64,000 nt of DNA, from contig JBITNC010000001.1 of assembly GCA_050084985.1 (NCBI GenBank), forward strand, positions 135,470,001 to 135,534,000, given 5' to 3'. Every line of letters starts with the position of its first letter. Positions within the stretch are counted from its first letter, which is position 1. The notes beneath the pieces are model-generated. The model had not been told where the DNA came from, made no database searches, and saw only the letters and a list, made by a program, of their open reading frames with translations. Source of the stretch: Nageia nagi. Its lineage: Eukaryota; Plantae; Pinophyta. A program made the position numbers and the translations under genes. This document shows positions 23,344 to 52,249 of this stretch, piece by piece.

Positions 23344-23346
23344 TTT

Positions 23347-26551: not shown

Positions 26552-26555
<4 letters not shown>

Positions 26556-26600
<45 letters not shown>
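26556..26600. repeat. (TA)n microsatellite
   Basis: 45-bp perfect run. Confidence 0.98.
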
Positions 26601-26603
<3 letters not shown>

Positions 26604-28500
26604 AAAAGGATGGATCTGTGTCCATGGTACATTCTATTAGTGAGCACTATTACCACTACTTCTAGCCTCACTAATCCAAAGTATGCTCCTATGACCACTA
26701 CTTTATCCATAAAAGGACACACCACCCAATATATCACTCCCACTAATCCCATGTGAGGCCATAAAGGCCTTAGCCCTCTCATATTTACTCCTAAGTAATA
26801 GAATTTCATTATCCATCTTCTCTATTTTATTCATCAAACTTTGAATGAAAGCCCACTATTCATTGGGTGGATGCATATCCATCCTCTCATGTAGCTTCTT
26901 CATGGATTGATCCATGGAGGCTATATGTGCATTTCTCACTACAAGTGTGGACTATAGGGTGAATAGCTGTAATTGTAATCCTAAAATCATGGTCTCGAAA
27001 GGCTTCAAGCTCTAAATATCCACCTCTAGGGTAGCAACTTAAGTAGAGGTGTCTCCTACAAATACATAGTTGTCATAAGTTAGTTTATTTTAAATAGAAT
27101 GCTAACATAAAATAATAAAAATACTTTTAAATTATTGAGTATATTGTACAGTATTACATGTTGCCACAAGTGGCACTGCCTCAACCAATGTATATAGACT
27201 CAATGCTTGTATATAAGGTTGCTCTTATACTATGATATTATGCATGGGGTTGTCTACATTTTATGGTTCTTCATTTTAGGACCCCTCTGAGCTAAGACCA
27301 TCTCTTCATATTCCTCCTCATCCTCCTACATATCCAATGGGTTCAGTCAAACTGTAACCCACCATGCTATGTATCCATGTGTAGTACCTAGGGCCATAGA
27401 TATATGCTCTATGGAGTACATTGTATATGTCTCCTCTCATGTGGTCCTCCAAGATGGTATAATCTCTCCCTCTTGGGCGAGATCCCTTTTAATCATTTGT
27501 TTGATATAGTAAATGGGAGAAGGTGGAATATCTTATTGTATCCCAAATTGCCTTAACACTCATTATGGAAAATAAGGCTCTACAAGCTTTCTCATGGTTT
27601 AGATAAAGCATGGTTACCATACCCATGCAAGTTGATATGCATCTTCCTCCCACACATTATCAACATAAGATACCCAAACTAGGTCCTCTAGGTATAGCCC
27701 ATCAATCTCATATCTACTAGACTCTAATGTCTATGGGCACCTATACCCATGCATCTTGGATATCCAACAAGTAAAGGTAATGTATGAAGGGTCCTACCTT
27801 ACTCTCTATATCCCAAATGGTCATATCATAACTATCTTCTCGTATGCCCACACTTGAAACAAGCCAAAGTGAGCAATAGTGATGTTAAACTTATGTACAC
27901 AAATAAAATTATACAAATACCTATAAAGTTTTGCTAACACAAAAGGATACCATGCATACCTTGTATGCCTAGCACAAATATTTTGCATAATCCACACCAT
28001 ACCTAATTGAAAGGATGAATTGCTCTTGTCTAGGCATAGGTAGGTGCATATGATGGAGATAATCAACAACCTCAAATGCTTACCTAGAGAAGCAAACTTG
28101 CATGCCTTTAATAAATGGGAGTACCTATGCTCCCAATCATGGTCTCCCTCCCCTATCAACCATTCTTCTAGGGTCTGATGGTCTTCATTGCTCCTAATAT
28201 CTTTAAGCTACAGTAATCATCCTTGAATGGGGATTTCCCATATCTTGTACACATCTAGAAGAATGATGGTTATTTCACCTAGGTAAAGGTGAGATATGTT
28301 GGTGTCTTGATCCCACCTCTTTTCTAAAGTAGTCAAAAGAGGTAATTCATGTTGGATGTGACCGACCACCTCTAATTCATTCAAGCAAGATCTCATGAGG
28401 ATATCATCCTCATGGTTTATTTTGGACCACCTCTTGGCCTTATCTAATGTTGTAGTCAACATGGATCCACCTCTGATCATTATTTTCTGATCGTTCAAGA
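26600..28500 (-). pseudogene. Plant mobile domain (PMD, MAIN/MAIL-like, PF10536) pseudogene with an intron
   Basis: LLTTLEKRWDQDTNISHLYLGEITIILLDVYKIWEIPIQG; YAWYPFVLAKLYRYL; LFQVWAYEKI; EPYFP**VLRQFGIQ*DIPP; TTHGYIAWW; GT-AG intron ~27057-27157. Confidence 0.9.
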
Positions 28501-30589
28501 TAAAAAAAATCCAAACATCATAAGAAAATCTACCTATAATTAATTATGAAATAAAAGGGAAAAATGGTACAAATTAAACAAGTAAAATGGTGGAAAATAA
28601 TGAAATGGACATCGCTAGGGGAAAATAAAAATTGAAATAGTATAACTCAATGAAGTCCTATTATTTCTAAATAAGGCAAACTAAAAATACAAAATAGAAG
28701 AGAATAAAAACATGAATGATACCCATTGCATGATCAAATACTAGGCTATGCAGATACTCCACAACATGTCCCTTATGTCATGTCATGGGCCTCTCAATAC
28801 TATGCCAATCTTGATTTGCCATGTCACTAAGCTAGCTCAAGTCCCTAAATGGCTAAGGCAAAGTTAACCACATAAGAAATCATCGATAGCCAAGCTCAAA
28901 AGTACTACCATGATGGACAAAATAGAGCCATAGTCTTCACCAACAATCACCAAGTACATGCAAAGTGCTAGACAACAAAAAGATAAAAGAGCAAATGGTA
29001 AACATGTAAACAAAATTTCTATATTTATTCAATTTTTACCCTAAGCCTAGATCAAACATGTGCATCTTTGAATGTCAATTTTCATGAATCAAACACGATT
29101 TATTATGTAGGAAAAATGAAGGAAAATATATTACTCAATAGTAACCTCTTTTTCAAAAACTAATTTTGCTGCATTCATGCTGCAAGTGGTGTATGAAAAG
29201 TAAAATTGTGGCTCAATCATTGCATGCTGGTGAAAAATGGTAGAAATGGTAAATTTGAATGTTTAAATCATGCATTAATGGTTAAATAATTGATATTGCA
29301 TTTTTACTATTTATTAATATTAAATGCACACTGCTAGAGGCATGATTTTTATAAAATTCAAAATGATTCCAATTTTATATTTAAATTCTAGTTTTGTTAA
29401 ATGCAAATTGATGATTAAATTGGATAATACCTGATATGAACAAGGAGAGTTTAAATCATAAAATATGATTTAATTAAATGCAAATATCAAATTTTAATTT
29501 TTACATTTTTGCATAATTTTGAGATGGTAAATACATGAATAATTATTGTTCAATGCCAATTGAACATGCTATCTTATAAGATGATCTAATCCATCATCTT
29601 CATGTAGTTAACGACATGAAAGAGGTAAAATTATGGGTTCCTTAATGTATGAATCACATTATCATAGTCTTAATTAATCAAATTCATTACTATCATGGTC
29701 ATATGGTTGCTAAATCGATAAGGTGTGTATCAAGTCTAAATTATCCAAGTTATTGTTTACATTCAAAATATTATGCAATACAAAAATATTATTTTTTGAT
29801 TTTATAAGGCAAAATATTATTTCTTATTTTCAATTGAACATCATTAAAGTTTTTAGATCTAATATGACTATTTCTACATTGCTACTGGTGTGTGTTTATT
29901 ATGATTACATTGTAAATGGTGCATGTTATAAATACTCAAATATTTTCTTAAAAATATCATTATTTCACAAATATGCATTGATATAGATCTGATTAACAAA
30001 GTTGTAAAAGACATGATTGTCAAATTCTATGCAAATCATGTTGTCAACAAAGTGAGTTTACTTTGAAAATAAATGAAATCAAGAAATTTAATATGATCAA
30101 ACATGTAATTTTGATATGAAAGGCCACTAAATACTTGAATATCTAGTTTATGTATGAGAATCAAATGATATTATTCAATGATATGATCAAACATGTACTC
30201 TCATTGTCTCAACCTTTACACATATGAGATTAATGTATTTTGAATACTTTTGAGTCATGTCTCCCTAATTAAATGATCAATTATAAATTATACATTATCT
30301 ATACCCTCCTCATTTTGGAAAAAAAATTTAGGATAAACTTGAGAAGGTCCATGACACATTTCTCTCACAATAGTCCGAGTACCCATCCCAGTACTCTAAA
30401 TGATCTCATGTGGTTGAAAAAATTCATAAGGAGTGGGAGTGTTTTAAATTACCAAATAATCTTCATCTAACTCAATATGTTGCAATTCAACCTTTCTTAT
30501 GCTTCAAACATTCTCAATATTTAAAGTTGGAAACACTAAACACAAAATATCAAATGTCTACTTAGGTTGATCCCTAGCATTAATTATGC

Positions 30590-32269
30590 TAATTATCTTT
30601 CCTCTCCTTTTGAATTATCCTAGTGATGGTATTAATGGTGGTGACATGGAAGTTATTCTTGTAGACACTATTCAATGAAAAATATAAAAAAATTGTAAGC
30701 CATTTGATTTTAACAAAATGTTCAACAAAATCATTGGTAGCAAGGTGCACTCGATCAGTTGCATGATGCATCTAATTGATAATAGGGTGTACCTAATCAA
30801 GTGTACCCTACTACTGATTGGGTGCATCATGCAATAAATTAGGTGCACTCTACTATTGGTTAGATGCTTCCATGAGGATACATTTACCTTGGGTTTCTTG
30901 AATGCCTTGTTAGGGTATCTAAATGACTACCCAGGTGGGTATCATTGTGGTTGCATGAGAGGATGTCCTAGTAGTTGGTTGAATAAAATATTAGTGTTTT
31001 GAAGTGTGATTTCTTGACTAATTGACTATGTGAATTATTGCATGTGTAGTTTCATATGTGCTTATTTAATTAGAATCATGTTTCAAAGATATCCTACATG
31101 TGCATTTAACATATATAGTGAAATTACGCATTGTAATAAAAAATAATCATAAGATTTATTTGTTGCATTTAATCTCTTTACCTACAATTAAAATTGTAGG
31201 AAATTGAGTTATTTTTGGTGTAATTAAATTATTAATTTTTTATTTTTTCAATATCATAAGGGGCTTTGTGTCCTTGTTATGCACATTAAAGTCTACCCCA
31301 CCTTTGGCTTTATGATCTTTCAAAGTCATCTCCCTCTTCTTTGCACTTGTAGATGCTCGAATCTGTATATGATAGAACTTTTATTTAGGCTTAATAATAT
31401 ATGCATCTTAAACATAATAATAAATATAGAAAGGAATAAATACCTAAATTTGTTCTAATGATAAAGATATTTGATTCATGCTTTGTGCCAGACATGTTGG
31501 TGGTGGTGCATTCATTAAATCATAAAAAGCTTCAAAGTAAAACTCTAAAATAAAATTAATTTGTGGTGATAATATTGGTGTTGTTAGCAAACACATCTCT
31601 TAAATATTTCCATATTCTCTCCAAAATATGATTGAAAAAATCAAATTTGGCTCCACTGAGCACATGAATAACATATATGCAAGCCCATTATGGAAGCTAC
31701 CTCAATCACCCCTATAGAACCACATATGTAAAAAAGATATCCATCATGGAATTGAGGTAATTGTTGGAAAAAGTATTGTAAAGCACACCTCTACTTGACC
31801 GCAACTCTAAAAATAGCCAAATAGAAAACATAGATTCATAATTATGAAAAAATTAAAATAAAATGACTCATGATTCATGAATATACAAAAGGTTAGAAGT
31901 TTACCTGGTTCATCGAAGGATACATTGTAATGGGACTTGAGGTACTTCTTCTCATCATCTCTAAAAATAGCCTTCAAATTTATTGCGTAAGTATTACCTT
32001 CTTTATTTGGTATATGAGTCAACCATTTCACATTTGATGTCGACTTGCCATAAACCAACATTTTTGAGGATAACTTGACTATGGAAATACTTTTTTATTG
32101 ATTGTAACTTGATAACAATATGTTTAGAAGCCTTGAATATATCTTAAACTAGGGCATTAAATAAGTCCTTAAAGACTTGACTTATCCATACAATTTATGT
32201 ACGTGTCTAGTTTTGTAAGCTCCAGTTAGGGTAAGTAACATTTTTGAAGGAAACCTTACTAGAATCCAT
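30590..32269 (-). pseudogene. hAT1 accessory gene (spliced, convergent with the transposase; 3' part lost)
   Basis: ATG at 32269. GT-AG introns 31807-31904, 31363-31443 and 30668-30887. Translated exons align with the hAT2 accessory gene. Confidence 0.8.
30720..30870. repeat. ~21-bp motif array in an intron of the hAT1 accessory gene
   Basis: Repeated GGTGCAC / GTTGCATGATGCA / GATTGGGTGCATCATGCA motifs, related to 20520-20650. Confidence 0.65.
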
Positions 32270-32469
32270 GATTGAACTAAGAAAACAATAGTCAAGAACA
32301 TAGATGGATGGTGGACTAGATTGAAAAATGATTAGAATGAATAGGAAAGGAGGGAACTCAGAAGGAATCAATAGAAGAGAAGAGTTGTGAGAAAATAAGG
32401 TTATGAAAATATATGTAAAAATGACTATTCATGATTATTTATAAACTTCCACACATGTTGCATTAATTT

Positions 32470-32730
32470 AATTGTACAATGGATGTCCTATGGATCAGTA
32501 GCAAGGTGCAACTGGTTGGTTATAACATGGAACATGATGATGATGGCACTTGCAACCAAACTATTGTACTTGTAATTGGAAGGTTTCAGAGTGCACCCAA
32601 CTATTTACATGATATGATCTTATGATATCAAATGCAATTGTAACCAAATGATTACATTTTCCACCATCTAGTTGCATCATACAATCGATCAGGTATAAAT
32701 GCAATCATCTGGTTGCATTTATTACCATCA
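32470..32730. repeat. Right subterminal motif array of hAT1
   Basis: Repeated TGCAACCA / TGGTTGCA variants (TGCAACCAAAC, CTAGTTGCATC, CTGGTTGCAT). Confidence 0.7.
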
Positions 32731-34649
32731 ATAATGTATGGTGGATAAATTAATGGAAAAAAATTCCTTACATTTTCATAAAATTTATATTCACCATTTT
32801 TTCATGCAATTTCATAGGAAAACTACCAATCATCGAATATCGAGAAAAATAATTTATCAAGCATTTGAAAAAAAATAATTATCTTAAAATTTACCTTACC
32901 CTCATCCTACAATATGCATCTTTATCTATGAATTAGCATCCTCATGTGATTCACCATTACATCTATGTTTGGTTGTCTTAGTATTAGTAGGGTCATTTTC
33001 ATCTAAAGAGGCAACTAGGTTATCTATGAGTAAATTTATTCATGGGATTTATTACTTTTTCCTTGATATTATAGTTCCCAACTTGATCAGTTCATTTAGG
33101 TACTGACCTATAGAATCAAAGTTTGTACCTTATGCATCTAGTATTGACTCATGTGATTCTATCTTGTGCATCTTGCATCATGTAGGTAAATAATTTTAGC
33201 ATACCTAATGGGACTCATCTCATGCACTTCAAGGTACATCTGGTGACTTGTTGCATATACCTATAAATGTTTTCTATATCTTATGTAATTCTTGTACAAA
33301 TACAAATTATTTTAGCCTCTTCTATGCAAGAATTCCCAAAACCTATTAAGAGGTAAATATGTATGTACCATAGCAACAATACATGAAAAGGAGTACCATA
33401 TTCATCTACACTTCATTTTACTTCACCCTAGCCAACCCCTAGCTAGCATCTAAGATTCATGATAGATCATTAGCATTAAGGGCTTGGGATGTAAGTATTA
33501 TGTATATTTATTATAAAATAGAATAAATATTTATAGATCCTAGTGCTTGAACATATCTTCCCAAAGTTTGAAGGCTTCTCCTTTATTTGGTGTTGCAATA
33601 ATATCATCCCTAGAGAATTCATTTCTAACTCATAATGGAGTTGTATCAATAAATAATTATGTACTAGGGGCATCAAGTGTAATACTTATAATGAAGACCA
33701 TATTGTTTGCCTCCCTACCTAGCCCTACTAAGATTTTCCCAACAAAAAGGGGCCATCATTCCATAAATAGCATGTTAGAAGAACCATCAATTGAATATAG
33801 TGATAATAAGTTTGAAAATTTATTATTTTATCTTTACCATAATATCGAGCCCTACTCACACCTATAATTGAAGGTGATTTTCCAATTGTTCACTAAGCAC
33901 TTTAGCTATACTAAGTAAAGGGGGTAAAAATGTTATTAAAATCATCATCTCTAGGAATTGGTGGCATGATGGCTCTTTATGGCCTTTAGACTCTGCCAAT
34001 AATAATTAAGGTAATCAAAGGCTTCTTGAATTTTCTTAATGCTAATGAGGCCATTTTGAAAATGTGAATATACCTCTTGGGAAATTATTAGGTAAACATA
34101 TTCAATATTAAATTAGATATGGAGGTACCAAGTGAAGAAGATTATAGAATTATTTATTTTAGGATCTCCATACTTGTAATATCATTTAAGGCAAGGCTCT
34201 CTTTCCCAATGGGGGAAAATACACATAGCCCTACATTCATTAAGTTCATGATTCCAATTGCAATTTTCTACATCCTATGGATAAGAAATTTAAAATGACC
34301 CAATCTTGAGCTCTTATGTAGTAGTAAGTTCAAAATCATCCATTCCCATCCATATTTTTACTATGACACCACCAATGAAAGTGAGTTCCCTCAACAACAC
34401 AAAAAAGAGTAAATCTTTTGCCTTGAAAGTATATGATGTTAGTGTTTCAAACTTCAAATTTGGTAATCTTATTTATGGATCTTTTCCACCTTTAATGATA
34501 TCAATTATGATATTTAATCCCATAAGAAAATATAAATTGAAGTAATACCAAATGATGTCATCAAAACAAAGCCTTGCCCCATCTAATGCATTGCAAGGCT
34601 AGGAGAATATATGACATCACCCTAAGAAATAACATTTTCTGAGAAGGAA

Positions 34650-36080
34650 GGTATGTGAATGTTTTATGGAATGCCTCATTGAAATTTGGCCTCTCAAGCT
34701 TAAGTAATATTAGGATATGTATAAAATTATTCTTGAGAAAGGCTCTAGAAACTCTTAAGCAAGTATAATTATCATATGTAAATCCAAACTATGTACTCTT
34801 TTCTAGTATATTCCATTATGGAATCTCATGAAGAAGGTATGGGAATACATCAATGAGTAGTCAAAAATTATTTTCATCAAATATTATGGTCATGAATGCA
34901 ATTATATACATTTACATAAAATGTATAAGGATAAACCAAGAACACACATTATTTGATGTAATGCTTCATTAAGATGTAGTTTTCCATATTGCAATAATTT
35001 CATAATGTGTATAAAATGGGTAATCCAAGAAGAATATAAAATTTTTTAGATGATGCAATTGATAGATGTAAAGATAAAATTCCAACATTCTTCTAGTGTG
35101 TGCCACCACAAGAACTAAAATAACACAATGGAGATTGAGAATTGTTTAATATAATACTTCACCAAAATTTAATCATATAGATTGCAATGATATCAAAATA
35201 TGTATAGAATGGATTTTTGGAAAGGTTATGGAAACTTTTAAGCAACTCCAATCATCAAATGCAAAGCAAAACTATGCAACCTAGGTCATCTTTATTCCCA
35301 ACATATGCCTTCATTGAATCTCATAAAGAAGGTTTGGAAATACACCAAGGAGGAGTTCAAAATGGTTCATATAATATTGTGGTTAAGAATGCCATTGTAG
35401 ATGTATATGTAAAATATGAAATAATAAACTAGGTCCAATAATTTTTTGATAAGATGTGTGATGCAAACATAGTATAGTATAATTAAATGATTAGAGAATA
35501 TATAATTCATGGCTACAATAAGGATTCCCTTTGACTATTTGACCCAATGAAGCATTCAAAAACTATAAAAACTTTCCCAGGACTTCTTAGTAACTGATGT
35601 CATCGATAACATTGATCAATATTGGTAAACATGTTCTTAGGTCCTCCCATCAAATGACATCAACCAAAACTTAAAACATGCTTGAGAATACATGTATGGA
35701 AAATCCTAAATCCTAAGAATCATTTGGTATAACATATAATGTAAACATATTTTTTAGGACTACAATGAGCACATGATATGCATAAAATAGAAAAAAAAGA
35801 TCATGAATTATTTTTATATACCTTATTAAAATACAATCACATGGACTATAATAATCATAGGATATTTATGAAATGGGTCCCAAGAAAAGGCTTTATAAAC
35901 TTTTAAGCAAGTGAAATTATCAAATGCAAAGCCAAACTATGCAACATGCGTCAGCTTTCTTTCCACCATATGCCACCATAAAAGCTCACTAGAAGGAATG
36001 GAGATTCATTAATGAGTAGTTAAGAATAGTTTTAATCAAATATTATGGTTATAAAGTTTTGGGAAGACATGTATGGTGGG
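34650..36080 (+). pseudogene. PLS-class PPR fragments, copy 2
   Basis: Colinear with copy 1. ORF 35217-35432 contains GLEIHQGGVQNGSYNIVVKNAIVDVYVK. Confidence 0.88.
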
Positions 36081-37287
36081 ATAATAGAACAAGTAAGCAA
36101 ATAAGTTAACATGATACAAATGTAGACTAAGTTTCAATAAGTACAATATGCAAATGGAGGCTCCCAAGTACATAGAGAATTGAATACATGTGAAGGTTGG
36201 TAATAAAGAGTGACTTCCTCATCAACATAGCCAAATTTGGTAATTATGTTCTAGTTGTTAGAGAATTCTTTGGGATTGTTACTTGAGCTACAAAAAACCT
36301 TCAAGTGTACATTTATCACCATTTTATAATAAAGTTTATCTTATAGGTTATTATACAATATAATTGACATCCAAAATCCTCCAAAGGTATCCAATAGAGA
36401 TCATGAGTAGGAATTTCAAACCTCCCAAGAGTCAAAAACTAAAGAAATAAAGGCTCAACATCATGAGATATCTAAGAGATGGGATTTTTCCAACAACAAA
36501 CTATGATATCTTCATGATGCCAAGTTGTAATTTTAGAACTATTTTTAGATTTATTATAATATAAATACCAAGAAGTAAAATTTTAACTTCCAAAAACACT
36601 ACAGAGTGATAATCGTAATCCTTCTCAACATGCATAGTTCTTGTACTAGAAGTTCATTTATCTGGAAATGCTCACAAGGAATGCATATGCATAGAAGATG
36701 TTGTTGTGTTATTGAACATAGCCTTTAGTCTTAAGATTAAGGTTGTGCATGAAGATAAGAGTCTAAGTTAAACAAATCATGCATCAAGCATGAAGGGGTC
36801 CCTTCTAGTGACCCAATAGTAATCTCACATAGCAGTTTAGGTTTCTTGAAAGTTAATTTCTTATTGTAAATGGCATGATTTCCTATTTCTACAGTAGCCC
36901 CTAGAGGTAGTGTAGAAGTACAAGTAGTTAAGGATTAGTTATTTCTTTTTAGGTTACTACAGGGTTCATTTTAACCAAATATTCTTTAATAAAGTTACTG
37001 CAAGAGGTTGGGTCCACTTTATGGCCAAAAAGTGGAAGCCTTTTCCTAATTTTTAGGTTTGGTCACATTGATTTCAAAATTTGAAGCACTTAGACATAGA
37101 ATCTTGAAGAAGCAAATTAGGGGAAAATGTAGTGCTTTGAGTATAGTTTTAAACTGTATAATTTATTTCAATACCCAGATGATAAAAATTTATTTTTGAT
37201 ATGTATGAATGAGAACCATTATTTAAAAAATACTATTTTTGGACCATACCATGCATATGTCCATCACACATATTCTGATCTAAACTA

Positions 37288-37570
37288 AAGTATTTTTTTA
37301 AATTCTTTTGAATAAAGATAACTAAAATAATGAAGCTTGTCTTGGATATTTTTTCATAATTTTTTCATGCATATTATTTTTTTATGGATTGTGATTGTAT
37401 TTTTGAAATATAATCATGTCTATCATGCATAGTAAGTATTTTTTAAATCCTTATGGATAAAGATACTTAAAATAATAAATCTTGTCTTGAATATTTTTCA
37501 TAATTTTTTCATGAATATTATTTTTTTATGGATTATGATTTAAAAAATGCTCGTGTCTATCATGCATAAT
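37288..37570. repeat. ~148-bp tandem duplication in the hAT2 left subterminus
   Basis: AGTATTTTTT(T)AAAT..ATAAAGATA..AAAATAAT..CTTGTCTTG..TATTTTTCATAATTTTT occurs twice. Confidence 0.85.
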
Positions 37571-38130
37571 TTGACCTAAAGTTATCATTTTTTTAAACTT
37601 CTTTTTTTTAATTTTGTAGAGAATTATCTAAAGGTTATCCTCATATATTTTTTCCTCAAAATTCCTAAAAAATAAAAAATTTATTAAACAAAATTATTTT
37701 TGAAATTTTGTAAGTCATAAAACTTCCTCTTTATATGGATAAAAAGCTATTACACAAATTTTAGAAATTTTAAAAATGAAAATTGGTGAATTTTTGAAGT
37801 TACAACAATAGCCATGTCTCCAAAAAAAAATATTTTGACTCAAGTCACCAAGTCAAATTAAAATTTTAAATAAAAATTTTATTTTTTTATCAATGTTTTG
37901 AAATAATAAATAGCTAATTTCATGTTGAAATTATAAATTATTATTTATATTTCAACTAAATCACCCATTATAAATACCTTAATATAAATAGTAAATTTGA
38001 TACATCCATTGTTATTTTCTTATGGATCTCCTTAGAGCGAGCATATCAACATAAACTATAGGTCCTAAAAAGAGTTATGATAATTAGTGAGATCTTATTC
38101 CTAATCTTGTTATGTTTCATAATATTTGTA

Positions 38131-38615
38131 ATTTGTATCTTCCTTTGAATGGTAGCATATGCCTTTAGATGGTGGCATCTACCTTTGGATGGTAGCAAAT
38201 GCTTTTGAAAGGTGTCATCTACCTTTAAATGGCTACTCTTGATTCTAAATGATTGCATCAACTTTTGAATGATGGTACCTTCTCTTGAATAGTGGCATCT
38301 TCCTTCAAATGATGGTATATGCTTCATACGATGGAATAATACCTATGGATGATGCAATACTACCTCTAGATGATGTAATACTACCTTCGAATGGTAGCAT
38401 TATACCACCAAATAGTAGCATGCTTCTATATGGTAGCATCATGCTACCTCCTAGTAGCAAAGTTCTACCACTTGAAAGTAAAGCACTCCACCCAGTAGCA
38501 AAGTGCTACCACTTAGTATCAGATTGCTACCATTTGATGATAGGATTTTATTGTTCAATGACATGATGTTACTATTTAGAGACATATTGTTATCATCTAG
38601 TAGCATTCTACCTAC
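38131..38615. repeat. 20-bp then 21-bp minisatellite (ATGGTAGCA/TGCTACCA motif), upstream of the hAT2 transposase
   Basis: Exact 20-bp register 38141-38320 (CCTTTGAATGGTAGCATATG variants), then 21-bp units from 38341. Confidence 0.88.
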
Positions 38616-38707
38616 AAATAATGATAGCATCAGTCCAATGGATTTCTAATCTTCATCTTTTTGGTACAATATTAAAAAATTTGATTCAAATGTTAATTGC
38701 AAATACT

Positions 38708-40426
38708 ATGGACTCTAGTAAAAATATTAAAAGGGAGTAAAAAAAGGGTATATTATCTTATTTTTCTAATGGACAATTGCAAAATGATGTAACTCAACAG
38801 GCATCTTCAATTAATACAGGCACTTATCTTATCTATAATTTTTAATGTAAGAGTTGAAATTTTAAATGTATTATCTTCAATATATTGAAAATACAATGTG
38901 AATGTTGAATTATAAGAGATATCCTTTTATATTTGATATGCAGAAAACCCCAATAATCAAGTGCCACATGATAATATTTTTGTTGCAATTGATGTGCAAC
39001 CACTTTCAATTGAGTACCTTACAAATGGACCATCTTTGCATGATGATAATCCTAACCCATATATTGAAAAATATTAAAAAAAATATACATAAAAATATAC
39101 ATAAAAAAATAATCAAAATTTGAAAATAAAATGAAGTGCAAAATGGACTATTGGAAGAGTTTTTCAGGTCAATTGGGCAGAAAAATATCCATTCATTGAA
39201 CCAACTGACCCTAATGATGGAAATGATCCAATAGAATGCAAATGTAAAATATGTTTTTGGGCAACAAAAATATAACATCAAATGAATCTAAAAATAGACA
39301 TAATACAAAATATTATGGTAAATTATATTTTAAAAAATAGATAAAAATGGATAGACAATTAAGTGTTGCATTGATAAAATAGAAGATGAGTGCAATCACT
39401 TATAATATTAGGTAGAATATGAGAGGTACATGAAATAAAAATAAGATCTACAAAACAAAGGTGGAATACTAGAAACATATTTTGAAATAATTAGTGATGC
39501 AAAAAGGTTAGTAAAATTTACTCAATTTTGTACTATCTTTCATACTTGTAAATAGTGGACCTATTTCTAATTTTATAAATTTTAAAATTTTATATCAAAG
39601 AGTTGGATTATAGAATATATCACAAAAGCATTGGTCAGAGATAAGTGCTTGAGAAATGGAAAAATGTTTATCAATGGTTTAGATTGAGAATTTAAAGGAA
39701 AATGTTAAAACATTATAATTTATTTCACTTTCATTTGATGAAGTTGTAGCAGTGGACAATACTTCATGGGTTTGCATGCATGTATACACTTTTCAGAATA
39801 ATTGTAGGATACCACATCTATTGAATGTTCATAAAATGGATGAAAATTGAAATGCAAAAAACCTTTACAAATTAGTTGTTTCTACCTTAAAAGATTTTGT
39901 TGGAATGGATGATTGTGAAATTACTACAAAATAGATATATGTTGGATCAGATGGTGTATTAGTAATGTAAGGTAATCAAAATGGTATTTATGTTAGATTA
40001 CATACTACAGTAGCTCCATATATGATTCACATTCATTATATGGTGCATAGAATGAACCTTGCATATAGAATTAATAGCACTTTTATAAGCATATCAAAAG
40101 TGGAAGAGCTTAATCATGACTTACATGCATATATCGCAAGAAGCCCAAAAAGATATAGGGAGTTCAAAAATTTCTTTGTTGGAATAATTGGTGAAAATAA
40201 GCTTTTAAAAGATGTTGATACAAGATGGATTTCATTTTATGAACCAACAAAAAGAGTTTTTCTTGAATATCCATCATTAACTACTTCTTTGTATGAACAT
40301 CATAATGTAATTGATAAACCAAAATATTTACTATTCTATTTGATAGATTTTTAAATATTGTTGATATTATGCAAAATTATTCCAATGTTATAGGAAATCA
40401 ATACTTCAATGAAACATACTCAAGAA

Positions 40427-40473
<47 letters not shown>

Positions 40474-41456
40474 TTAATATCTTTGAGAAATAGGTATCTC
40501 AATCTTTGGATATGCTTTATACAGGTGAAGATAATTTTAAAGGTCCTTTATTTCAAAGATGGTAAACTTTGATAAATGTTAAAGATCCAAACAATTTTTT
40601 GAAATTTAATATCACTGATCATCATTGTATATACATGAAAGGAAAGTTCATACCATTGCATATTAAAAATATTGGAAGGAATTTGGTTGGAGAAAAATAC
40701 AAAGATGAACCTATAAATCATCTTCTTTTTTATAATTATATTGATGACACATATATTAATTTGAGAAAGATTTGTACAACCTTAACCAATTAAATCTGTG
40801 AATAATTTCAATGAGATGATTTACTTGAATCAATGCTTATTGTGAACCCTAAATTTTGGAATATAGATAATGGTGAATAGTTAATTCATGATTTATTTCA
40901 CAAAAACATGGTAATTATTAGATCACATTTTGGTAAACCTATAGAAGTAAATGGACTAAAATTTGATGGTATTTTAAATAAAGAGTTGTTGACAAAACAA
41001 GCCAACCATTTTGGACTTTCTATGATTGATCAATACTCTCTACTATCAAAACCAACAAAAAATGGTGGTATTAAATATCTTTGGTTAAAATATTATCCAA
41101 ATATAGTTCTTTGAGATAATATTAATGAGTATTTAATATTATATGAATTATGTCAAATAATGATTTTGGATTTTGTTGAATACAAAACAGTATTCAACTC
41201 TTTATCTTTTATTAAATCCAAGGTTCAAAATAAATTGGATAAAAACTTGGATATATGTATTAGATTATACGTTTTCCCTTATAATGTGGATTCTTGTCGC
41301 ATATAAAGGGTAGTGGATCTTTGATTTGCTATTGCACAAAGGAGAGGTGTAGATAATTATGAAGAAAATGTTGCAACTAAAACTTGCACACCAACACCAA
41401 AAATGACCATAATAGAACAAGTTTTCAAAGGGTTTGAATTTGAAATACCTAACTAA
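38708..41456 (+). pseudogene. hAT transposase (ZNF862/ZMYM-like type), near full length, decayed
   Basis: WAEKYPFIEP...CKCKIC; FISLSFDEV; VGSDGV; IHYMVHRMNL; KLLKDVDTRWIS; C-terminal dimerisation-like LDFVEYKTVFNSLSFIKSKVQNKLDKNLDICIRLY. The start KKGILSY matches hAT1 KKNILSY. Confidence 0.92.
40429..40470. repeat. (AT)21 microsatellite inside the transposase frame
   Basis: 42-bp perfect run. Confidence 0.98.
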
Positions 41457-41702
41457 GATAGATTTTTGAAGAGTTTGAATTTTAAATAATTATAGTTATG
41501 TATCTTTCAATTTGCTAATCAAATTTGTTACATGTTATTATTGACTTATAATTTAAGTTAGTATTTTTACACTTTTGTGTAAAGTATTTGTTGCATATTA
41601 TTTTATGTAAAGTATTTTTTGATGAAATACTAAAATATTTATGAAAGCCATTTTAAATTAAACATTTGAATATCAACTATATAAATTTGAACAAACACAA
41701 TA

Positions 41703-41820
41703 TTTCAAACATAACAAAACATTCAACCATAACATAAAATTCAACTATAACATAACATTCAACCATTACATAAAATTTAATTATAACATAATATTCAACC
41801 ATAACATAACATTCAACTAT
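41703..41820. repeat. 18-bp tandem repeat (ATTCAACCATAACATAAC, ~6.5 copies) between the convergent genes
   Basis: Unit starts at 41721, 41739, 41757, 41775, 41793 and 41811. Confidence 0.9.
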
Positions 41821-42227
41821 TAAATTTACATATCAACTATTTAAATTTTAAATGAACACAATATTTCACATATTGAATAATATTCAACCACAACATTTTC
41901 ATATCAATAATTTAAATTTGAACAAACACATAATACCATCAAAGTAGTCTAAAACATCAAAATAGTCTTAAACCAAAGGACTTTAACCTACCAAAATACT
42001 TTAAACCATCAAAATGTCCAAATAAAAATAGTCTCAATAGTAAAAAATTAAATTAAGATTCCTCTCCCCCTTCTCCTCCTCCTAACCCCTCTATCTCATC
42101 TGATGAAAGACCAACAATAGTAACTGCTTCGGTAAGATTGCATAATATATCTCATTCTAATGTAGATGCATTATCTATTGAAAGTAAATTGGAATCTATA
42201 AAGGTTTTCTCTTTACATAATATATAT

Positions 42228-43619
42228 TGATCCATAAACCCTACTTTAGGATTTAATTTGTATCTTCACACTTTATTCACTTTAGTGCTTATAGAAATAA
42301 AAATGCACACCAAATCAAAAACACATAAAATGATGTACACACATAGTTATCCTAGTTCAACTAATGTGCTCTAAATCCAAAAAATATAAACCCATTATTG
42401 TAGAGTCCATTTTACAATGTCACTTGTATGATCCTCCTTGATTCACTCTTTTATTTATCAAAGCTGAACCACATGATCACTGTAGGCTTTCCACTGAATC
42501 TCTTTCTTGAAGATGACTCTCTTTTCAATGAAAGTCCTTGAGCATAGTTATGCATCTCTTATCTTAAGATGAAATATTTAGAACTAATATTTATCTATTT
42601 TTCTTTCCATCATGGTGATTATATCATCCACTTCTTTCTCCATGGAAATAAGCTTGTCCATATTCTTTTTTCTTTTTCTATGCAAGTTTGAAATGCACCT
42701 CCAATATTACTCTCATGGTTTTGTTATTTTTCATGGAGTTTAAATAAAATAGAGTTTTCTACATTATTTGCAAACCTACACTAACTCAATCCCTTTGGAA
42801 GGAAATCCACATTAAAGGACTTAACCTTCTTTTCATATTCCATGTTCCCTTTTATAACATTAAGGGATTACAAATTTGGAGTTTATGGTTACATGGTGAT
42901 AAGATAATATTTGTTATTTTTCCTCCTTTACAATATGCTCTCTCATCCTCACAACAATAATCTCCCTCATTTGTATTCATATAGCATTATTTTGGCCTCA
43001 TATGGTTATATTCTCCTATCTTTTTGGATTTTGCAAAACTATCAAAACTACTTCTAATGCTATTTTGTCATGACCATAACTTCATGAACATAATTCCAAA
43101 TGTCATTAAATTTGATATAGGTGTTATTGGATATATGTACCTTAAATGGTTTAAATTTAAATCTTAAAATCCTTATTGATAGCTCTTAGCATTTTCATCA
43201 AGTTGGCCTCCAACACACATTTACACCTAGCAGCTATCAAAGTTTTGATTGTCATGAATGTAGAATTATAATTTACCATTTTATGAGCACCATAAATTTC
43301 AATTAATCCAAATACCTTAAAATTTTAACCACATGTTCACTATAATATGAGGTACTAATTATTCAAAATTTAAGCTATGAATCAACTCGATCTACTCCTG
43401 GTGAGTTCATCAATAGAGCCTTCCATGCATGTTTTGCATTTTTTATATTTAACTTCAAATTTTGAAAAGCCATAACTTACAAACCATAGCTCTATTTTAT
43501 TTCTATTTAAAGCATTAGAATCATGGTGGAGAGCTCTTTCATATAGAAAATAATAATCAACAAAATTATAAACTTGAAAAATCACCATTTTCTAAGACTA
43601 AGAAATCCATTTTGGATCA
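42228..43619 (-). mobile_element. Solo LTR (LTR family A, copy 3)
   Basis: TGATCC...GGATCA termini, TSD TATAT/TATTT, colinear with 11931-13308, no adjacent PBS or PPT. Confidence 0.9.
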
Positions 43620-44899
43620 TATTTGAATCAAGATGATGCTCCTTGATTGTTAGAATAGAAGCATTATTCATTTTGCTTAATTAATCCATCTCATCCTTAA
43701 TTTTAATGGTCATATTGATACTTTTTTTTATAATTTTCAAATGAATATTAAACATTTGAACATCTTTTATCAATTTATTATACCTCACCTACAATCAAAT
43801 AACAAAATATAAATATTACAACTCAAAAAAAAATTATTTTTAAAACATAAACAAAATATATAAAAATTGGAAAGTACTTTGTTACCTCAGCTTGTTCCTT
43901 TTGGGCCTTTGCAATCTCTACTAAATTTTTGTCTCTTGACTAGAGGTCATAATAGGCTTGAGCTTTTGCATTTAAATTTTCCAAATGGTTACACATAATA
44001 CCCATTACATTATCATCATATCCTCTTTGCACGGTGATTGAACCTACTTTTTCTTGAGCCCTTAAACTTTCTATTTTAGTAGGTTTATTCTCAACCAATT
44101 TAAATAAAGAATCCTATTGAGAATGATTGTGATAATGGGTATTGATTTCCTTTATCAATGATTTGGTTCCCAAAATTTTTTCATATTTAAAGTATTGATG
44201 TTATATAGTATAATGTCATTTAGTTGTGCCAAAGTATCATCTAAAATAAGTGCATTTAATGAAAAGTATGTAAGTTCATCATTTGTTTTACCAAAAGTGT
44301 CCTGCATGTTTTATGGATATGGTGCAAAACTTATTTGTTGAGGATGATAAGGTTGAGAAATATTAACTTTATTCTAAATAATATTATGGGTGCTCATCTA
44401 AGGATTTGAACCATTGTGAATTCCCAAGTAATCCACATCTAATTATATATTTCACAAATCAAAAATGCTAACACTTTGTACATCCTCCAAATCAAAATCA
44501 AGAAAAGAAGAGATTCTCGATAAGTTAACCATTATGTTGCTCATAGAAGGATGATCCTACTATAAATTGATATGTTTTACTACTCTTTTTATGGATATTG
44601 GATGTGGAACAGGTTGTGGAGGCATGGGTGACCTTCTTTTTTGAGAACTTAACTTGCCACCTATATCAAAAAATTATGTATTATAAAATATGAGCTTATT
44701 TATATTGGATAACAAATTTGGATTAAAAAAATTAAAAAATATTTACTTGATGGAGGAGTAGATGATGTAGGTTAAATTAGTTGATTAGGTGAATCTACCA
44801 TATCTTGATATGAAATTGTGATAACTAGAATAAAAGTTGCATGGAAATATATATTTATATACTTAAAGTTAGGGTTATAAAGATGGAGAAATAAAATAT

Positions 44900-45105
44900 T
44901 CACATGATGGTATGGTGCTACCATACAGTGGAATAGTGCTACTAGGTGGTGGCATGTTGCTATTATGCAATGGATTAGTGATACTGGGAGGTGGCATGCT
45001 GCTACTATGTAATGGCATGGTATTGTTGAATGGTGGAACCATGCTACTATGTGGTAGCAACATGCCACCATGTGATAGCACCATGCTATCATAAGGTAGC
45101 ACCAT
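44900..45105. repeat. 21-bp motif array in an intron of the hAT2 accessory gene
   Basis: Units like GTGCTACTAGGTGGTGGCATG and ATGCTACTATGTGGTAGCAAC. Confidence 0.85.
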
Positions 45106-46724
45106 TACAATGCATAGGCATACATAAATAACAATTTTACCTCCTTATCCTATTGTACCTTCAACACCTTTGACTTCTTGTCCAAACTCAAAAGTTGAAA
45201 TCCTTTCAAGATAGCTCCTACTAGGAATAGAAACATTACCTTATCCTACAACCATAACAATATGTTAAAAAACTTAAATAATTAATATAATTAAATAAAA
45301 AATATATATCAACTATAGTAAAAAATATATGTATTCATTTAACTTTCACCAATAGTAGGAGGTGATACATTCCTTATCTTCCTAGTAGCCAATATTCTAA
45401 ATATTAACAAGATACTATTTTTTGCAGACTCAGTATCACCATTGCCTTCAAGACAAACTCCTCTAAGTTTTACTTCCCTTTTCTTTGATGTTTATTCTTC
45501 CTAATGCTAAAATAATATAATTTTTTAATATTTGTAAAATAATTATTCAAGTTCAAAAATTTTAGCTCAAAATATGAAATAATTATGATTTTTAGATACC
45601 TAAATTTCTTTAGTTAGTAAACCTATTATACTCATTTTTGAATGCAATACTATTGTAATTGGAGCTATATTTACTAAATTATGAAAAGATTCATAATAAA
45701 AAGCCAAAATATAATTTGTACATACCACATAACTATTATAATTCTAAAGGGCAAAGCTTAGATCATGTTTAATTCTATCTAAAATATATGAATACCAGTC
45801 AAAGTTTTGACCATTGAACAAACAAAGGATGTAAAATATAGACCATAATGGAATATTTGATGTTCTTCCTTGTAAAATAATTCTAGATTGAAAAAATTCA
45901 TAGATTGCTTTGAAGTAATCATTTTAGAAATTTTTGTACACAATTCTTCTTTTGTTTCGATACTCTGCATAAAATGAATGCAAACAATTAATAAAGTTTA
46001 AATTATAAATTAATATATAAAGTTAATGAAAATCAATTTTAAAAATAACATACCATTTGAGTCAATTTGAATCTAGTAAGTTTATCTAAATAGGTTTTAT
46101 CTTCTGGAGACAAGAGAGCTTTCTATTTAACTTCAATTACACCATCACCATGATGTAGTAAATTAGTCAACTAAGCTATGTTTGCAAGAGAAACACCAAA
46201 GGAAAAGCTCCTTGATTTTGTTACCATACAAAACCTTACTTATTTGGTATCATAACAAGACATAAGATAGTCCAATAAATTGGAATTTGTTTCAAATTAA
46301 GGCATAAAATAAGGCCTCCAAGCCTTATCTAGTCCACCCAATTTGAGTAACATTTTGGGGTAAAAAAGATAAAATATTAGGGCATGATAAATTTCTATAT
46401 AAAAATCGATGGTTGGTGGATGATGAGAGATGTAATTCTGTAGGAGTGTTAAACATGCTAGTAAAAAGTTAAAAACTATGGCTAAAAGTAAAATATTGCA
46501 GTAAAAGACAAAGAAAATGATATCTCTAAGAGGAAAGAATAATCTAAAAGTGCCACCTAAATATTATTTATTGAAAATGTAGACCACATGGCATCCTACT
46601 ATAGGTTGGAGATAAGATTTGAATAAAATTATAGAAAAAGATAGCTCTAGACAAGTGGACAAAATGATAGAATGAAAAAAATAAGTCACTTATTCCCTAT
46701 TTATAGATAATTAACATGTGGCAC

Positions 46725-46913
46725 CATGACTTGACATGTGTAGTGGTGGCAACAAGCTTTAGTATGCCATGTAGTAGCATTCCAACATCTACTACTAGGA
46801 AATAGTAGAGTACCACTATTATGAAGTGGTAGTTTACTACTACCCAATAGCATCCTGCTACCACCTGAAAATAGTTTGCTACCACCCCTACACCCGATAG
46901 AAGTCTGCTACCA
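46725..46913. repeat. Right subterminal ~21-bp motif array of hAT2
   Basis: Repeated (T)GCTACCA / TACTAC...ATAG. Confidence 0.75.
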
Positions 46914-49154
46914 TAAAAAAAAAAAAATGAATTTTAAAATTCATCATAAAAATTTATATTGCTTTTTCTCCAACTTCAAATTTACCTTTGTATTTTTGAA
47001 AACATTTCTTAAAATTACCTCAACTATGAATCTAATTTGCCAAAAAATTCTAAGTTACTTTTCAAAAAAAGCTCTTAAAATGAACCCTAGGTAATTAGCT
47101 TATCTATTATAAATAGAGTCTAATAATGTAATAGAGGGGGATTGGATTACTCAACATTTTTCCTTTAATAATGGAATATTGCTTATTTTTCTTTAAATTT
47201 AGTATGGATATATTTACCCTTTTATTTCAATGTTTGTGTTATATGATGCTTAAATGGTTAAATTTGGCAAATTCTTCTTATGTCCTAGATGGTGGTGGTT
47301 AAGGCATTAGTGGCTTTTGTGCCTCACATTTTTTTTTGCAGATAAGTGGTTTTATGTTAATTCATGGTTGTGAGCTAGGTTTCCTCCCTATGGTTCTTTT
47401 AATCTATCAAAATCCTTGGTTGGTCTCATGTTCCATCATTTCCCATTCATTTCCTATATTTGTATGCTTTTTTGAGTACCAAACTCTTTATGATATCTTT
47501 TTCATCTCTTTCTTACATCTTTTGGCCTTGACCAAAAGGCTTTTCATGCCCATTGGAGCAATCCGTGACAAAATTAGAATTGAACTGTGAATCCCCAATC
47601 CTATAGTGTGCATCTTTATCTATGAAGTGATATCCTCATAGGATTCACCACTTTGTCTATGAGTTGATTCTCTTAGGATTGGTAGGATCATTTTCTTCAT
47701 CTAAAGATGAAACTAGATTATTTACAAGTAAATTTCTTCATGGGATTTATTACTTTGTCCTTGAGATTATAGTTCCCAACTTGATCAATTCATCTAGGCA
47801 TAGACCTATAGAACTAGAGTTTCAACCACATCCATCCAATGTTGGCTCATGTCACTCTATCCTGGCACATCTTACATCGTACAAGTAAATAATTTTGGCA
47901 AACCTAATAGAACTCATCTTGTGCACTTTAAGTTACATATGGAAACTTATTATTGCATATACTTGTAAATTTTATCAATATCTTATGTAATTATTTACAA
48001 CTAGAATTACTTTGCCTCTTCTATGCAATAATACCAAAACCCTATTAAGAGATTAATATGTATGTATCATAGTAGCGATGGATGAAAAGGAGTCCTAGAT
48101 TCATCTACACTTCATTTTATTTCACCCCACTCAACCCCTACCTATCATCTAAGCTTCATGAAGGATCATTGGAATTAAGGGCTTGGGATATAATTATTGT
48201 GTCTATTTATTGTAAAATAGAATAGATATGTATAAAATAGAATAGAGATAAATAGGCCTTGGTGCTTGAACATAGATTACCAAATTTTTAAGGCTTCTCC
48301 TATATTTGGTATCACAAGAATATCATCAATGGAGGAGTCATTTGTAACTCACAATGGTGTTTTAATTATTCACTAAGCACTTCAACATGATTGAAATACT
48401 CAATGAAGGGGCCAAAAATGTTATCAAAATAACCATATCTAGAAGCTAGGGGCATGATGATTCTTTATGGCCTCTAAACTATGCAAATAATAATTGAGGT
48501 AATCAAAGGCTTTTTGGATTTTCTTAATTTTTGTCAAGCCATTCAAATAATGTGATGATACCTCTTAGGAAATTGCTAAGTAAACATATTTGATCTTAAA
48601 TCAAATATGGAGGTACTAAATGAAGAAGATGGTAGAATCATTTATTTTAACATCTCTAGACTTGTAAGATCATTTAAGGAAAGCCTCTCTTTCCTAGTAG
48701 GGGAAAATATACACACCTCAGATTCATTAAGTTCATGATGTCATTTGCAATTTTCCACATCTTGGGGATAAGCAAGTTAAAAGGACCCAATATTAGACCC
48801 TTATGTAGTTTATGTCAACATACTACATACTAGTAAGTTCAAAAGCATCCATTCCCATCCATATTTTGACTATGATGTCACCAATGAAAGTGAGTTCCCT
48901 TGGAAATATAAAAATACTAATTCTAATACCTTGAAATTATATAACATCAATATTTCAAACTTAACTCTGGCAAGCTTATTCTCAAATCTTTTCCACCTCT
49001 TACATCATCAATTATAATATTAGTTCTAATAACAAATATACATTAAAGTAAGACCAAATGATTTTATCAAAACAAATCCTCACCCCATCCAATGCATTAC
49101 CAAGCTAGGAGAATAGATGATATTACCCTATACAACAAAATTGTCTAGGAAGGA

Positions 49155-50540: not shown

Positions 50541-52249
50541 GGAGCGTAGAACAAGTACACAAATAAGTTGATAAGATATAAAAGTAAACCTAGTTTCATT
50601 TACTACAATGAGTGCAATATAGAAAAGGAGGATCCCAACAACATAAATAATTGAATACATATGGAGGTTGATAATAAAGAATTACTTCCCCATTAACATA
50701 GCCAATGTTGGTAATTATGTTCCAGTTCTTAAATAATTTCCTAGGATTGTTATTTAACCTATGAAAAACTTTCAATTGTGCATTGATCACCATGTTATAG
50801 TTAAGTTTTTCTTCCAAGTTATTGTACATTACAATTAACACCTATCATACTTCAAAGGTATCAAATAAAGATCATGAGCAGCATTTTCAAACCTCCTATA
50901 AGTTGAAAAATAAAAAAATAAATACTCAAAATCATGAGATATCTGAGAGGTAGGATTCTAATAATTTTTGCAATAAAGTATGATGTCATCATCAATACAA
51001 GTTACAATTTTAAACTTATTTTCATATTTCTTTGAGAAGCAATGTTAACAAGTAAAATTTTAACTCCCAGTAGCACTATAGAGTGATAATTGTGATATCA
51101 CTTGACATGCATAGCTCTCGAACTAGAATTTAATTTATATGGTGATGCTCATAAGGCAAGCACATGTGCATGAGATGTAGTTGTGATGTTGAAAATAGCC
51201 TTTATACTAAAGATGAAGGTTGTGAATTAAGAGAATATTCTAATTCAATCAAATCATGCACAAAGCATGAAGGGGAGCACTCTAATGGCTCGAAATTAGT
51301 CTTAGGAAATAGTTTAGGTTTCTTAAAAGTTAACTTCTTCTTGTAAACAATATGATTGCCTATTTTTGTAGTAGGACTAGAGGTAGTGTAATAGTAGGAG
51401 TAGTTCAATATTAGTTATTTATTTTTAGGTAACTAGCTCATTTATTATAAATAGAGATTTTGATAATGTAATAGAGGGGGATTGGATTACTTGGCATTTT
51501 CCCTTTAATAATGTAAAATCACTTATTTATCTTTAAATTAAGTGTGGATATGCTTTCCCTTTTGTTTCAATTATTGTGTTTCATGATCCATAATTAGTTG
51601 AATTTGGAAGATTATTCCTATATATTGGATGGTGTGGTTGAGGTATCAGTGGTTGTTGTGCCTTATCTCTTATTTTGGATAGGTGGTTTTTTGTTAATGC
51701 ATGGTTGTGAGGTAGGTTTCCTCCCCATGGTTTTGATTTGATATAATAAAAGCCCAAATTGGCCTCATTGTCTACCATTTCTAATTTTTTTTCTTGTATC
51801 TCTATGCTTCTCTAAGTACCAAACTCTTTCTAAAATATTTTTCCTCTCTTTCTTACATATTGTGGGTTCAACTGAAAGGCTCTCCATGACCATTAAAGCA
51901 ATCATCGACCTAACAAAATCAAAATTGAAATATGAATCATCAATATTGCATTATACATCTTTGTCTACTAAGCAACATCCTCACAAGATTAGCCACTCTA
52001 TCTGTGAGCTTGTTGTCTCAGGATTGGTAGGGTCATTTTTTTTATCTAAGGAGGAAACTAGCTTGTCTATGAGTTAGTTTCTTCATGGAATTTATTACTT
52101 TGTTCATGATATTATAGTTCCCATCTCGAGCAGTTCATCTAGGCACCAACCTAGAGAACGAAAGGTTGGATCTTGTCCATACAATAATTCCTCATGTGAT
52201 TATGGCCTAGTACATCTTACATCATGCAAGTAAATAGTTAATAATATTG

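Follow-up and report, generated by a model that had tools for sequence, protein, structure and literature searches.

The superfamily hAT is the textbook single-gene group of eukaryotic DNA transposons, and the locus studied here raises the question of whether one hAT lineage has carried a second gene of its own. The locus lies in a 64-kb window (the whole stretch of contig JBITNC010000001.1 from Nageia nagi that was analysed; all coordinates below are window positions), in which two divergent elements, hAT2 and hAT1, are found. A first-pass annotation of the window had claimed that both elements carry a second gene convergent with the transposase gene, and homologous minus-strand exons were indeed found in both. 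In each element a second gene of two exons, hereafter the accessory gene, is predicted on the minus strand, convergent with the plus-strand transposase. We consider it probable that these elements represent a hAT-type lineage with its own second, two-exon gene, which lies near the 3' end, runs convergent to the transposase gene and is dead in both copies. The annotation knew of no description of such an arrangement, and our literature searches for a two-gene hAT or a hAT accessory gene found none either. Accessory genes of transposons with terminal inverted repeats (TIRs) are known as a kind; to read the present one as a component of its hAT lineage is reasonable, and not proven beyond this genome.

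Both elements are real insertions, as proven by uninterrupted paralogous sites. They are inserted in successive units of a tandem repeat (unit ~4.56 kb; units 77–81% alike), and the uninterrupted units of this repeat are the empty sites for hAT2 and hAT1. The borders first proposed for hAT2 (36960-47089; 10,130 bp) held, being defined by TIRs, an 8-bp target-site duplication (TSD) and empty paralogous sites. Its TSD reads GGTTACTA / GGTAATTA, compared with a single GGTAACTA in two uninterrupted paralogous units (51428-51435 and near 19650), and its TIRs are 13/14 complementary and start CAGGG / TAGGG. Element hAT1 (20168-32898; 12,731 bp) is bounded by TIRs that are 12/14 complementary and start CAAGG / TAAGG, and by the 8-bp TSD CCCTAATC / CCCTCATC, where the uninterrupted unit reads a single CCCCAATC near 47593-47600. 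No exact copies of the end sequences of either element occur elsewhere in the window. The span 30590-32269, which had been taken for hAT1, proved to be its accessory part alone, with the transposase at 21209-22708. As ranges of the second gene, both this span and 42055-46456 in hAT2 were too long, because they include a repeat (42220-43619) and motif arrays (44772-45105 and 30738-30870).

The predicted accessory gene is compact, with a span of ~0.75 kb in both elements (46353-45600 in hAT2 and 32241-31444 in hAT1) and an ATG 736 bp (hAT2) or 657 bp (hAT1) from the 3' end of the element. The product would be ~220 residues long for hAT2 and 233 for hAT1, where exon 1 has a 12-codon internal duplication. 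The gene was compared and searched exon by exon and by stop-free piece, with X at stops. Translated comparison (tblastx) of the two copies matched 45971-45771 with 31813-31613 (57 bits) and 45716-45627 with 31557-31468 (34.5 bits), and all accessory matches were confined to one minus-strand frame. In Smith-Waterman alignment, exon 1 scored 108 (z 20) and the two halves of exon 2 scored 132 (z 18) and 72 (z 11), and none of 500-1000 shuffles reached the observed scores. The homology claimed for exon 1 was borne out by these controls, and the lengths of 365 versus 363 nt given for exon 2 were also correct. In contrast, the introns and the 300-bp flanks of hAT2 and hAT1 showed likeness at the shuffled level.

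The intron interrupts the alignment at a homologous place in both copies. The earlier claim that exon 2 has the same flanking intron positions was therefore correct for intron 1 (89 vs 98 nt) and failed for the exon 2 donor, since the frame ends in TAG there. Exon 2 of both copies extends from the AG to a conserved ...AAATTTAG followed by GTAT; both frames close with ...ATT TAG and then GTAT, and a homologue from Taxus, described below, stops at the same place. The accessory coding sequence (CDS) most likely ends at this shared TAG. A third exon sharing KKRE, which had also been proposed, was rejected, as the best of 9 frame pairs gave z 3.3 and the exon 2 frame hits TAG at the proposed donor. 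Some 20-70 bp upstream of the hAT2 ATG, the conserved block listed in Table 1 may be either the promoter or 5' untranslated region, or a lost upstream start.

The pattern of differences between the copies is that of a coding sequence. Over 183 codons, the accessory gene of hAT2 and that of hAT1 differ at codon positions 1/2/3 by 86/65/105, and the transposases show the same pattern (170/115/195); within exon 1, the first 34 codons of the alignment already give 16/8/16 differences. At family level, 1,166 contigs of one DNA run map on the hAT2 accessory region at an identity of at least 80%. The depth of this pile-up is 1086-2634 in the exon 2 core and 1312-1522 in exon 1 and the upstream block, compared with 66-257 in the intron and flanks; it is 1522 at the block 46373-46426, and the homology of many contigs stops at 46426. 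This depth profile argues that the family is highly repeated and that the exons are its best-kept parts. Conservation limited to the exons and biased towards position 2 supports the view that the predicted accessory gene was kept as coding sequence.

Open relatives of exon 2 occur outside the window. A HMMER search with a 59-residue open piece of exon 2 against 1.84 billion representatives retrieved a Taxus chinensis protein (KAH9292251.1, P0001) and one Logan protein, and the third relative came from a profile search; the Logan proteins are P0002 and P0005. KAH9292251.1 is a chimeric model, of which residues 60-183 correspond to a complete open exon 2 (E 3e-9, z 37). Exon 2 of hAT2 shares 47% identity with it over 58 residues and ~40% over the whole exon, and exon 2 is open for more than 110 residues in both Taxus and P0005. 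Homologue searches with the Taxus domain alone and with the alignment recovered nothing beyond P0001, P0002 and P0005.

The accessory product is predicted to be a helical protein of ~220-233 residues, and no Pfam family matches it. The AlphaFold2 (AF2) model of the Taxus homologue is helical and of low confidence, with a predicted local distance difference test score (pLDDT) of 55. Among the neighbours that the ESM Atlas gives by structure for Taxus residues 60-183 are plant transposable element (TE) proteins: a cluster of which 99% carry PF20167 (Transposase_32) has a template-modelling (TM) score of 0.62 over 98 residues with a model pLDDT of 0.57, and an ATHILA ORF-1 cluster has a TM of 0.39 for the low-confidence model of this domain. 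One neighbour in feature space also carries PF20167, with the listed matches scoring 0.89-0.90, where the Atlas counts a feature score below 0.9 as a lead only. Exon 1 of hAT1 had no usable match in the Atlas, and hmmscan gave no match to the PF20167 and PF03078 profiles up to E 10.

The stop codons of the two copies have to be read against the state of the host DNA. The window has 29% G+C, a CpG observed/expected ratio of 0.08 and a CWG ratio of 0.24, with a TpG+CpA excess of 1.21 across its whole length, which indicates plant-like DNA that has lost most of its methylatable cytosines through heavy methylation-driven C-to-T decay and is reminiscent of gymnosperm genomes of the Welwitschia type. 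This decay accounts for the abundance of stops in all the TE genes of the window. In the accessory gene of hAT2, four stops lie in exon 1 (46299, 46242, 46173 and 46125) and two inside exon 2; in that of hAT1, three lie in exon 1 and four inside exon 2, which also has one frameshift.

Several results count against a second gene kept by a hAT lineage. Both accessory copies are pseudogenes, with 6 (hAT2) and 7 (hAT1) internal stops, and in exon 1 two of these fall in the same alignment column (46299-46297 TAA and 32151-32149 TAG) and others in adjacent columns (46242 and 32097). With a CpG observed/expected ratio of 0.08, the shared and adjacent columns may plausibly stem from C-to-T changes that struck Gln, Arg or Trp codons in parallel; alternatively, the real frame may start further downstream, so that the true CDS start is uncertain. 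A search for sequencing runs that contain the stretch returned one DNA run and none recorded as RNA. By hmmscan against Pfam, 10 stop-free accessory pieces and P0001, P0002 and P0005 had no relevant match; the same scan recognised a real plant mobile domain (PMD, PF10536) elsewhere in the window at E 1.6e-8 and found no PMD in the accessory pieces or in these three proteins. Comparison of the accessory protein with that PMD (27824-28543) gave an hhalign probability of 0.13 and a blank BLASTP, and Foldseek of the Taxus AF2 model against PDB had no match at E ≤ 0.001. The transposase pieces and an intact 874-residue relative from a metagenome contig (L006:408-3029) matched no Pfam model, the hAT models and PF05699 included, and no PDB sequence. 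The nearest intact transposase relatives retrieved, the group of L006, have no accessory gene within 9 kb downstream. Finally, the accessory protein may be, at the level of a lead, a remote member of the TE-borne class of Transposase_32, ATHILA ORF1 and PMD-like proteins, in which case it would be less unprecedented than the first-pass annotation implied.

In the reading that we favour, the accessory gene would already have existed in the ancestor that hAT2 and hAT1 share, would have been maintained as a coding sequence for most of the time since the two diverged, and would then have been killed by decay of the C-to-T type. The gene is considered ancestral because it has the same place, orientation, intron and stop in elements with different TIRs, different half-sites and ~43% transposase identity. 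The first-pass annotation had called it an ancient, selected component of the lineage; its ancestry and its exon-only, coding-type conservation uphold the claim in part, and the death of both copies and the lack of the gene in the L006 group tell against the remainder.

The same facts bear on a different history, in which part of a host gene, or of a retrotransposon accessory open reading frame (ORF) similar to Athila ORF1 or Transposase_32, was picked up by the ancestral hAT in the manner of Pack-type elements and passed on as cargo that never served the element. TIR elements including hAT do capture genes, and Mutator-like elements (MULEs) have captured PMD genes (PMC5418596). The nearest structural neighbours of the accessory protein are retrotransposon-borne, both copies are dead, and intact transposase relatives without the gene exist, all of which would fit such cargo. 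However, the exons can still be aligned and show conservation at position 2, whereas the intron and flanks have been randomised, the intron, start region and stop are all kept in sublineages with 43% transposase identity, and the exons are the best-preserved parts across more than 1,000 contigs. The gene is also a complete two-exon unit with its own conserved upstream block, unlike the usual captured fragments. Passive inheritance therefore seems unlikely to us, even if it deserves some weight.

A further question is whether the elements are hAT at all, or belong to another superfamily with 8-bp TSDs, which would make "two-gene hAT" a misnomer. The transposases of hAT2 and hAT1 are clearly related, with 43% identity over 428 aligned residues, 71% DNA identity over 524 bp and tblastx matches in all six frames. 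The hAT2 remnant retains HYMVHRMNL, DTRWIS and a C-terminal ...FNSLSFIKSKVQNKLDKNLDICIRLY, and an alignment of 15 transposase relatives has the blocks HCMAHRMNL, DTRWIS and C-terminal SVEDERMFSALSFLKSKLRNRL; the intact L006 transposase ends in ...SVEDERMFSALSFLKSKLRNRLDKNVETCLRLY. These three blocks, seen in the alignment, we take to be the classic hAT signatures. An 8-bp TSD is present in both elements, as are short TIRs of the (C/T)A(G/A)GG type, and the starts CAGGG and TAGGG presumably resemble the ends of Ac. The elements are accordingly placed, on these structural features (TSD, TIR and motifs), as putative hAT. The lack of any Pfam or PDB match for the transposase pieces and the 874-residue relative leaves room for another superfamily, as does the AF2 model of that relative, which has a pLDDT of 38 and was unusable. 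Against this stand the 8-bp TSDs, the short TIRs that open with CAGGG (5') and TAGGG (3') and presumably resemble those of Ac, and the conserved HCMAHRMNL, DTRWIS and SVEDERMFSALSFLKSKLRNRL blocks, and we regard a different superfamily as improbable.

It is very improbable that the conserved blocks are not protein-coding and represent cis-acting DNA, such as transposase-binding sites or a promoter, or a non-coding RNA: the in-frame exon 1 stops at the same or adjacent columns, the conservation continuing upstream of the ATG and one weak plus-strand tblastx match in exon 1 would agree with it, but similarity is limited to one frame, position 2 is the best kept (8 versus 16 and 16 differences in the first 34 codons of exon 1), and exon 2 is open over 110 residues in Taxus and P0005 with an amino-acid z of up to 37. 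We likewise find it hardly credible that a separate small mobile element with this gene entered two unrelated hATs at one and the same subterminal position. The gene has motif arrays on both sides, as a non-autonomous element would, but these show the half-site of whichever element harbours them (GTAGCA in hAT2, GTTGCA in hAT1); no internal TIR copy or TSD is present at the inner border, and the two copies agree in orientation and in distance to the 3' end. Exact TIR matches occur solely at the element ends, and a nested element with borders of its own is thereby rejected.

The nearest relatives of the transposase qualify the distribution of the accessory gene. A metagenome scan with the transposase recovered 80 plant-like loci, none of which had an accessory homologue; only L006 is long downstream, so the result is weak either way, and the positive control of the scan in the window passed. 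No complete TIR/TSD pairs were present in these 80 loci. The close relative L001/L002 (85% DNA identity, for L001 to the hAT2 transposase remnant) stops short of the accessory region. Intact single-ORF transposases of 873-901 residues are encoded by L003:2353-4983, L005:7363-9981, L006:408-3029 and L008:1130-3832, which are 80-85% alike in DNA from ~45-90 bp before the ATG to ~0.8 kb past the stop, and none of the four matches a Pfam family. Because the contig homology is limited to the CDS plus ~0.8 kb, the L006 group is suggested to be a compact element or a domesticated gene.

If a hAT-type lineage did keep this second gene, the arrangement of short motifs offers a candidate role for its product. 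Each element has three arrays of palindromes with a 21-bp period, near the 5' end, between the convergent genes, and between the accessory gene and the 3' end, and the half-sites differ by one base, GTAGCA in hAT2 and GTTGCA or GGTGCA in hAT1. Subterminal arrays are ordinary in hAT elements; an internal array and the bracketing of a second gene are not. Accessory proteins in Harbinger, CACTA and Mutator/VANDAL elements determine whether nuclear import takes place, the ends are recognised or silencing is evaded. The second proteins of En/Spm, Harbinger and VANDAL bind short family-specific motifs near the ends (PMC12973397). TE-borne PMD-C proteins are suspected anti-silencing factors (bioRxiv 10.1101/2024.09.27.615353; PMC5418596) that have been proposed to act via palindromic DNA motifs and resemble VANC (bioRxiv 10.1101/2024.09.27.615353). 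The accessory protein might act in trans as a candidate binder of the 21-bp palindromic arrays of its own family, and such recognition could either assist the transposase at the element ends or work against silencing. The analogues would be TnpA of En/Spm, the Myb-like protein of Harbinger, VANC of VANDAL, and PMD-C proteins with their palindromes. By analogy with these systems, a trans-acting partner that recognises the arrays of the family, for end recognition or anti-silencing, is in our view the likeliest role, though still rather doubtful. A more specific module, in which a small helical protein similar to PMD or VANC co-evolves with three family-specific 21-bp palindrome arrays and its binding keeps the element unsilenced or recruits the transposase, is speculative and unlikely as it stands; if true, hAT elements would have their first system with an accessory protein, and the very high copy number of the family might be explained by it.

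The coordinates of the features discussed above, and of the surrounding repeat, are collected in Table 1.

Table 1. Positions of the predicted genes, termini, motif arrays and repeats of hAT2 and hAT1 in the window.
Feature	Position	Strand	Remarks
hAT2 left TSD GGTTACTA	36952-36959		Empty paralogous site GGTAACTA
hAT2 5' TIR CAGGGTTCATTTTA	36960-36973	+	Besides itself, exact match in the window at the 3' end alone
hAT2 array A	38273-38650		Half-site GTAGCA/TGCTAC
hAT2 transposase remnant	39114-41357	+	Many stops; tblastx vs hAT1 and vs L006/L001
Unrelated 1.4-kb repeat within hAT2	42220-43619		83% identical copies at 11923-13308 and 13819-15163
hAT2 array B	44772-45105		Internal array of eight 21-bp units, on the downstream side of the two convergent genes
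hAT2 accessory exon 2 (predicted)	45964-45600	-	365 nt (363 from second AG); TAG at 45602-45600
hAT2 intron 1 (predicted)	46053-45965	-	GT...AG, 89 nt; unalignable to hAT1 intron
hAT2 accessory exon 1 (predicted)	46353-46054	-	From ATG 46353; 100 codons
Conserved block just upstream of hAT2 ATG	46373-46426	-	HHPP/HHPS in frame; weak tblastx match to 32313-32212
hAT2 array C	46697-46913		3' subterminal, upstream of accessory gene
hAT2 3' TIR TAGGGTTCATTTTA	47076-47089	-	End sequence read reverse-complemented
hAT2 right TSD GGTAATTA	47090-47097		Empty paralogous site
hAT1 left TSD CCCTAATC	20160-20167		Empty paralogous site CCCCAATC
hAT1 5' TIR CAAGGAAAATTTTA	20168-20181	+	
hAT1 array A	20555-20683		TGCAACC...GGTTGCA
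hAT1 transposase remnant	21209-22708	+	C-terminal part lost to nested insertions
hAT1 array B	30738-30870		GGTGCA/TGCACC palindromes, downstream of accessory gene
hAT1 accessory exon 2 (predicted)	31806-31444	-	363 nt; TAG at 31446-31444
hAT1 intron 1 (predicted)	31904-31807	-	GT...AG, 98 nt
hAT1 accessory exon 1 (predicted)	32241-31905	-	From ATG 32241
hAT1 cluster C	32401-32760		GTTGCA/TGCAAC, 3' subterminal
hAT1 3' TIR TAAGGTAAATTTTA	32885-32898	-	
hAT1 right TSD CCCTCATC	32899-32906		
~4.56-kb tandem repeat units	16593-20167; 32899-36959 + 47090-47597; 47598-~52236		Hosts both elements

Both elements also contain foreign or duplicated material. The transposase of hAT1 lies ~8 kb from the accessory gene with nested elements between them, and the interior of hAT1 from 22.7 to 30.5 kb is taken up by nested material. 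Part of it is a 335-codon open frame (23531-24535, plus strand) followed by further pieces (24640-25187, plus strand), which are gag-like by eye and for which Pfam gave no retroelement match, and a genuine PMD gene (PF10536) on the minus strand at 27824-28543 (region 27300-28543; Pfam E 1.6e-8 and 1.6e-5). The nested pieces from 23531 to 28543 are probably a Gypsy-type element. In hAT2, the 1.4-kb repeat between the convergent genes has a strong negative GC skew and occurs once in the element and twice in tandem ~28 kb upstream; it has no copy in hAT1 and is foreign to the accessory gene. The 5' part of hAT2 holds, before motif array A, a direct duplication of 109 bp with 89% identity (37288-37396 and 37434-37540).

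Compared with known systems, the accessory protein shares with PMD (PF10536), which is present in Gypsy and MULE elements and in the host proteins MAIN, MAIL1 and MAIL2, the character of a plant TE-borne, mostly helical domain with obscure biochemistry. By eye, the exon 1 stretch ...N(I/V)xWLTx(L/I)...G may recall the PMD consensus "...DVxxLLGLPxxG", although hhalign and BLASTP against the real PMD of the window were blank. It differs in that the known PMDs of DNA transposons are fused to MULE transposases (PMC5418596), whereas here the protein is a separate predicted spliced gene in a hAT. Transposase_32 and ATHILA ORF-1 are accessory TE ORFs with obscure function that are reportedly related to each other (PMC11728184); they are Atlas neighbours of the Taxus domain at lead level, and they are carried by Gypsy long terminal repeat retrotransposons, not by hAT.

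Classical hAT elements with a single gene (Ac, Tam3, hobo, Hermes and the plant hATs of TTF/ZMYM1 type) resemble hAT2 and hAT1 in their 8-bp TSD, short imperfect TIRs (CAGGG.../...CCCTA), subterminal arrays of short motifs, and a single-ORF transposase of ~870 residues with HCxAHxxNL, TRWxS and a C-terminal ER.FS. In contrast, the elements described here have a second convergent gene, predicted to be spliced, inside the 3' end, a third motif array that is internal and separates the two genes, and a transposase too divergent for the Pfam hAT models. Both genes of this abundant family escape recognition by Pfam and are thereby invisible to domain-based TE pipelines in large genomes of the gymnosperm type.

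The two-gene TIR transposons, namely PIF/Harbinger (Myb-like ORF1), En/Spm-CACTA (TnpA), MuDR (MURB) and VANDAL (VANB/VANC), are alike in being cut-and-paste elements with a second gene, in the faster evolution of that gene (here ~30% vs 43% identity) and in the arrays of short family-specific motifs near their ends. They are different in that the superfamily here is hAT as judged by TSD, TIR and motifs, and that the accessory protein has no Pfam similarity to Myb-like, TnpA, MURB or VANC/DUF1985 proteins. A new protein family paired with family-specific motifs would make co-evolution of protein and motif directly testable. If true, a hAT lineage that kept a second, predicted spliced gene through deep divergence would represent a fourth case of this kind after Harbinger, CACTA and Mutator/VANDAL.

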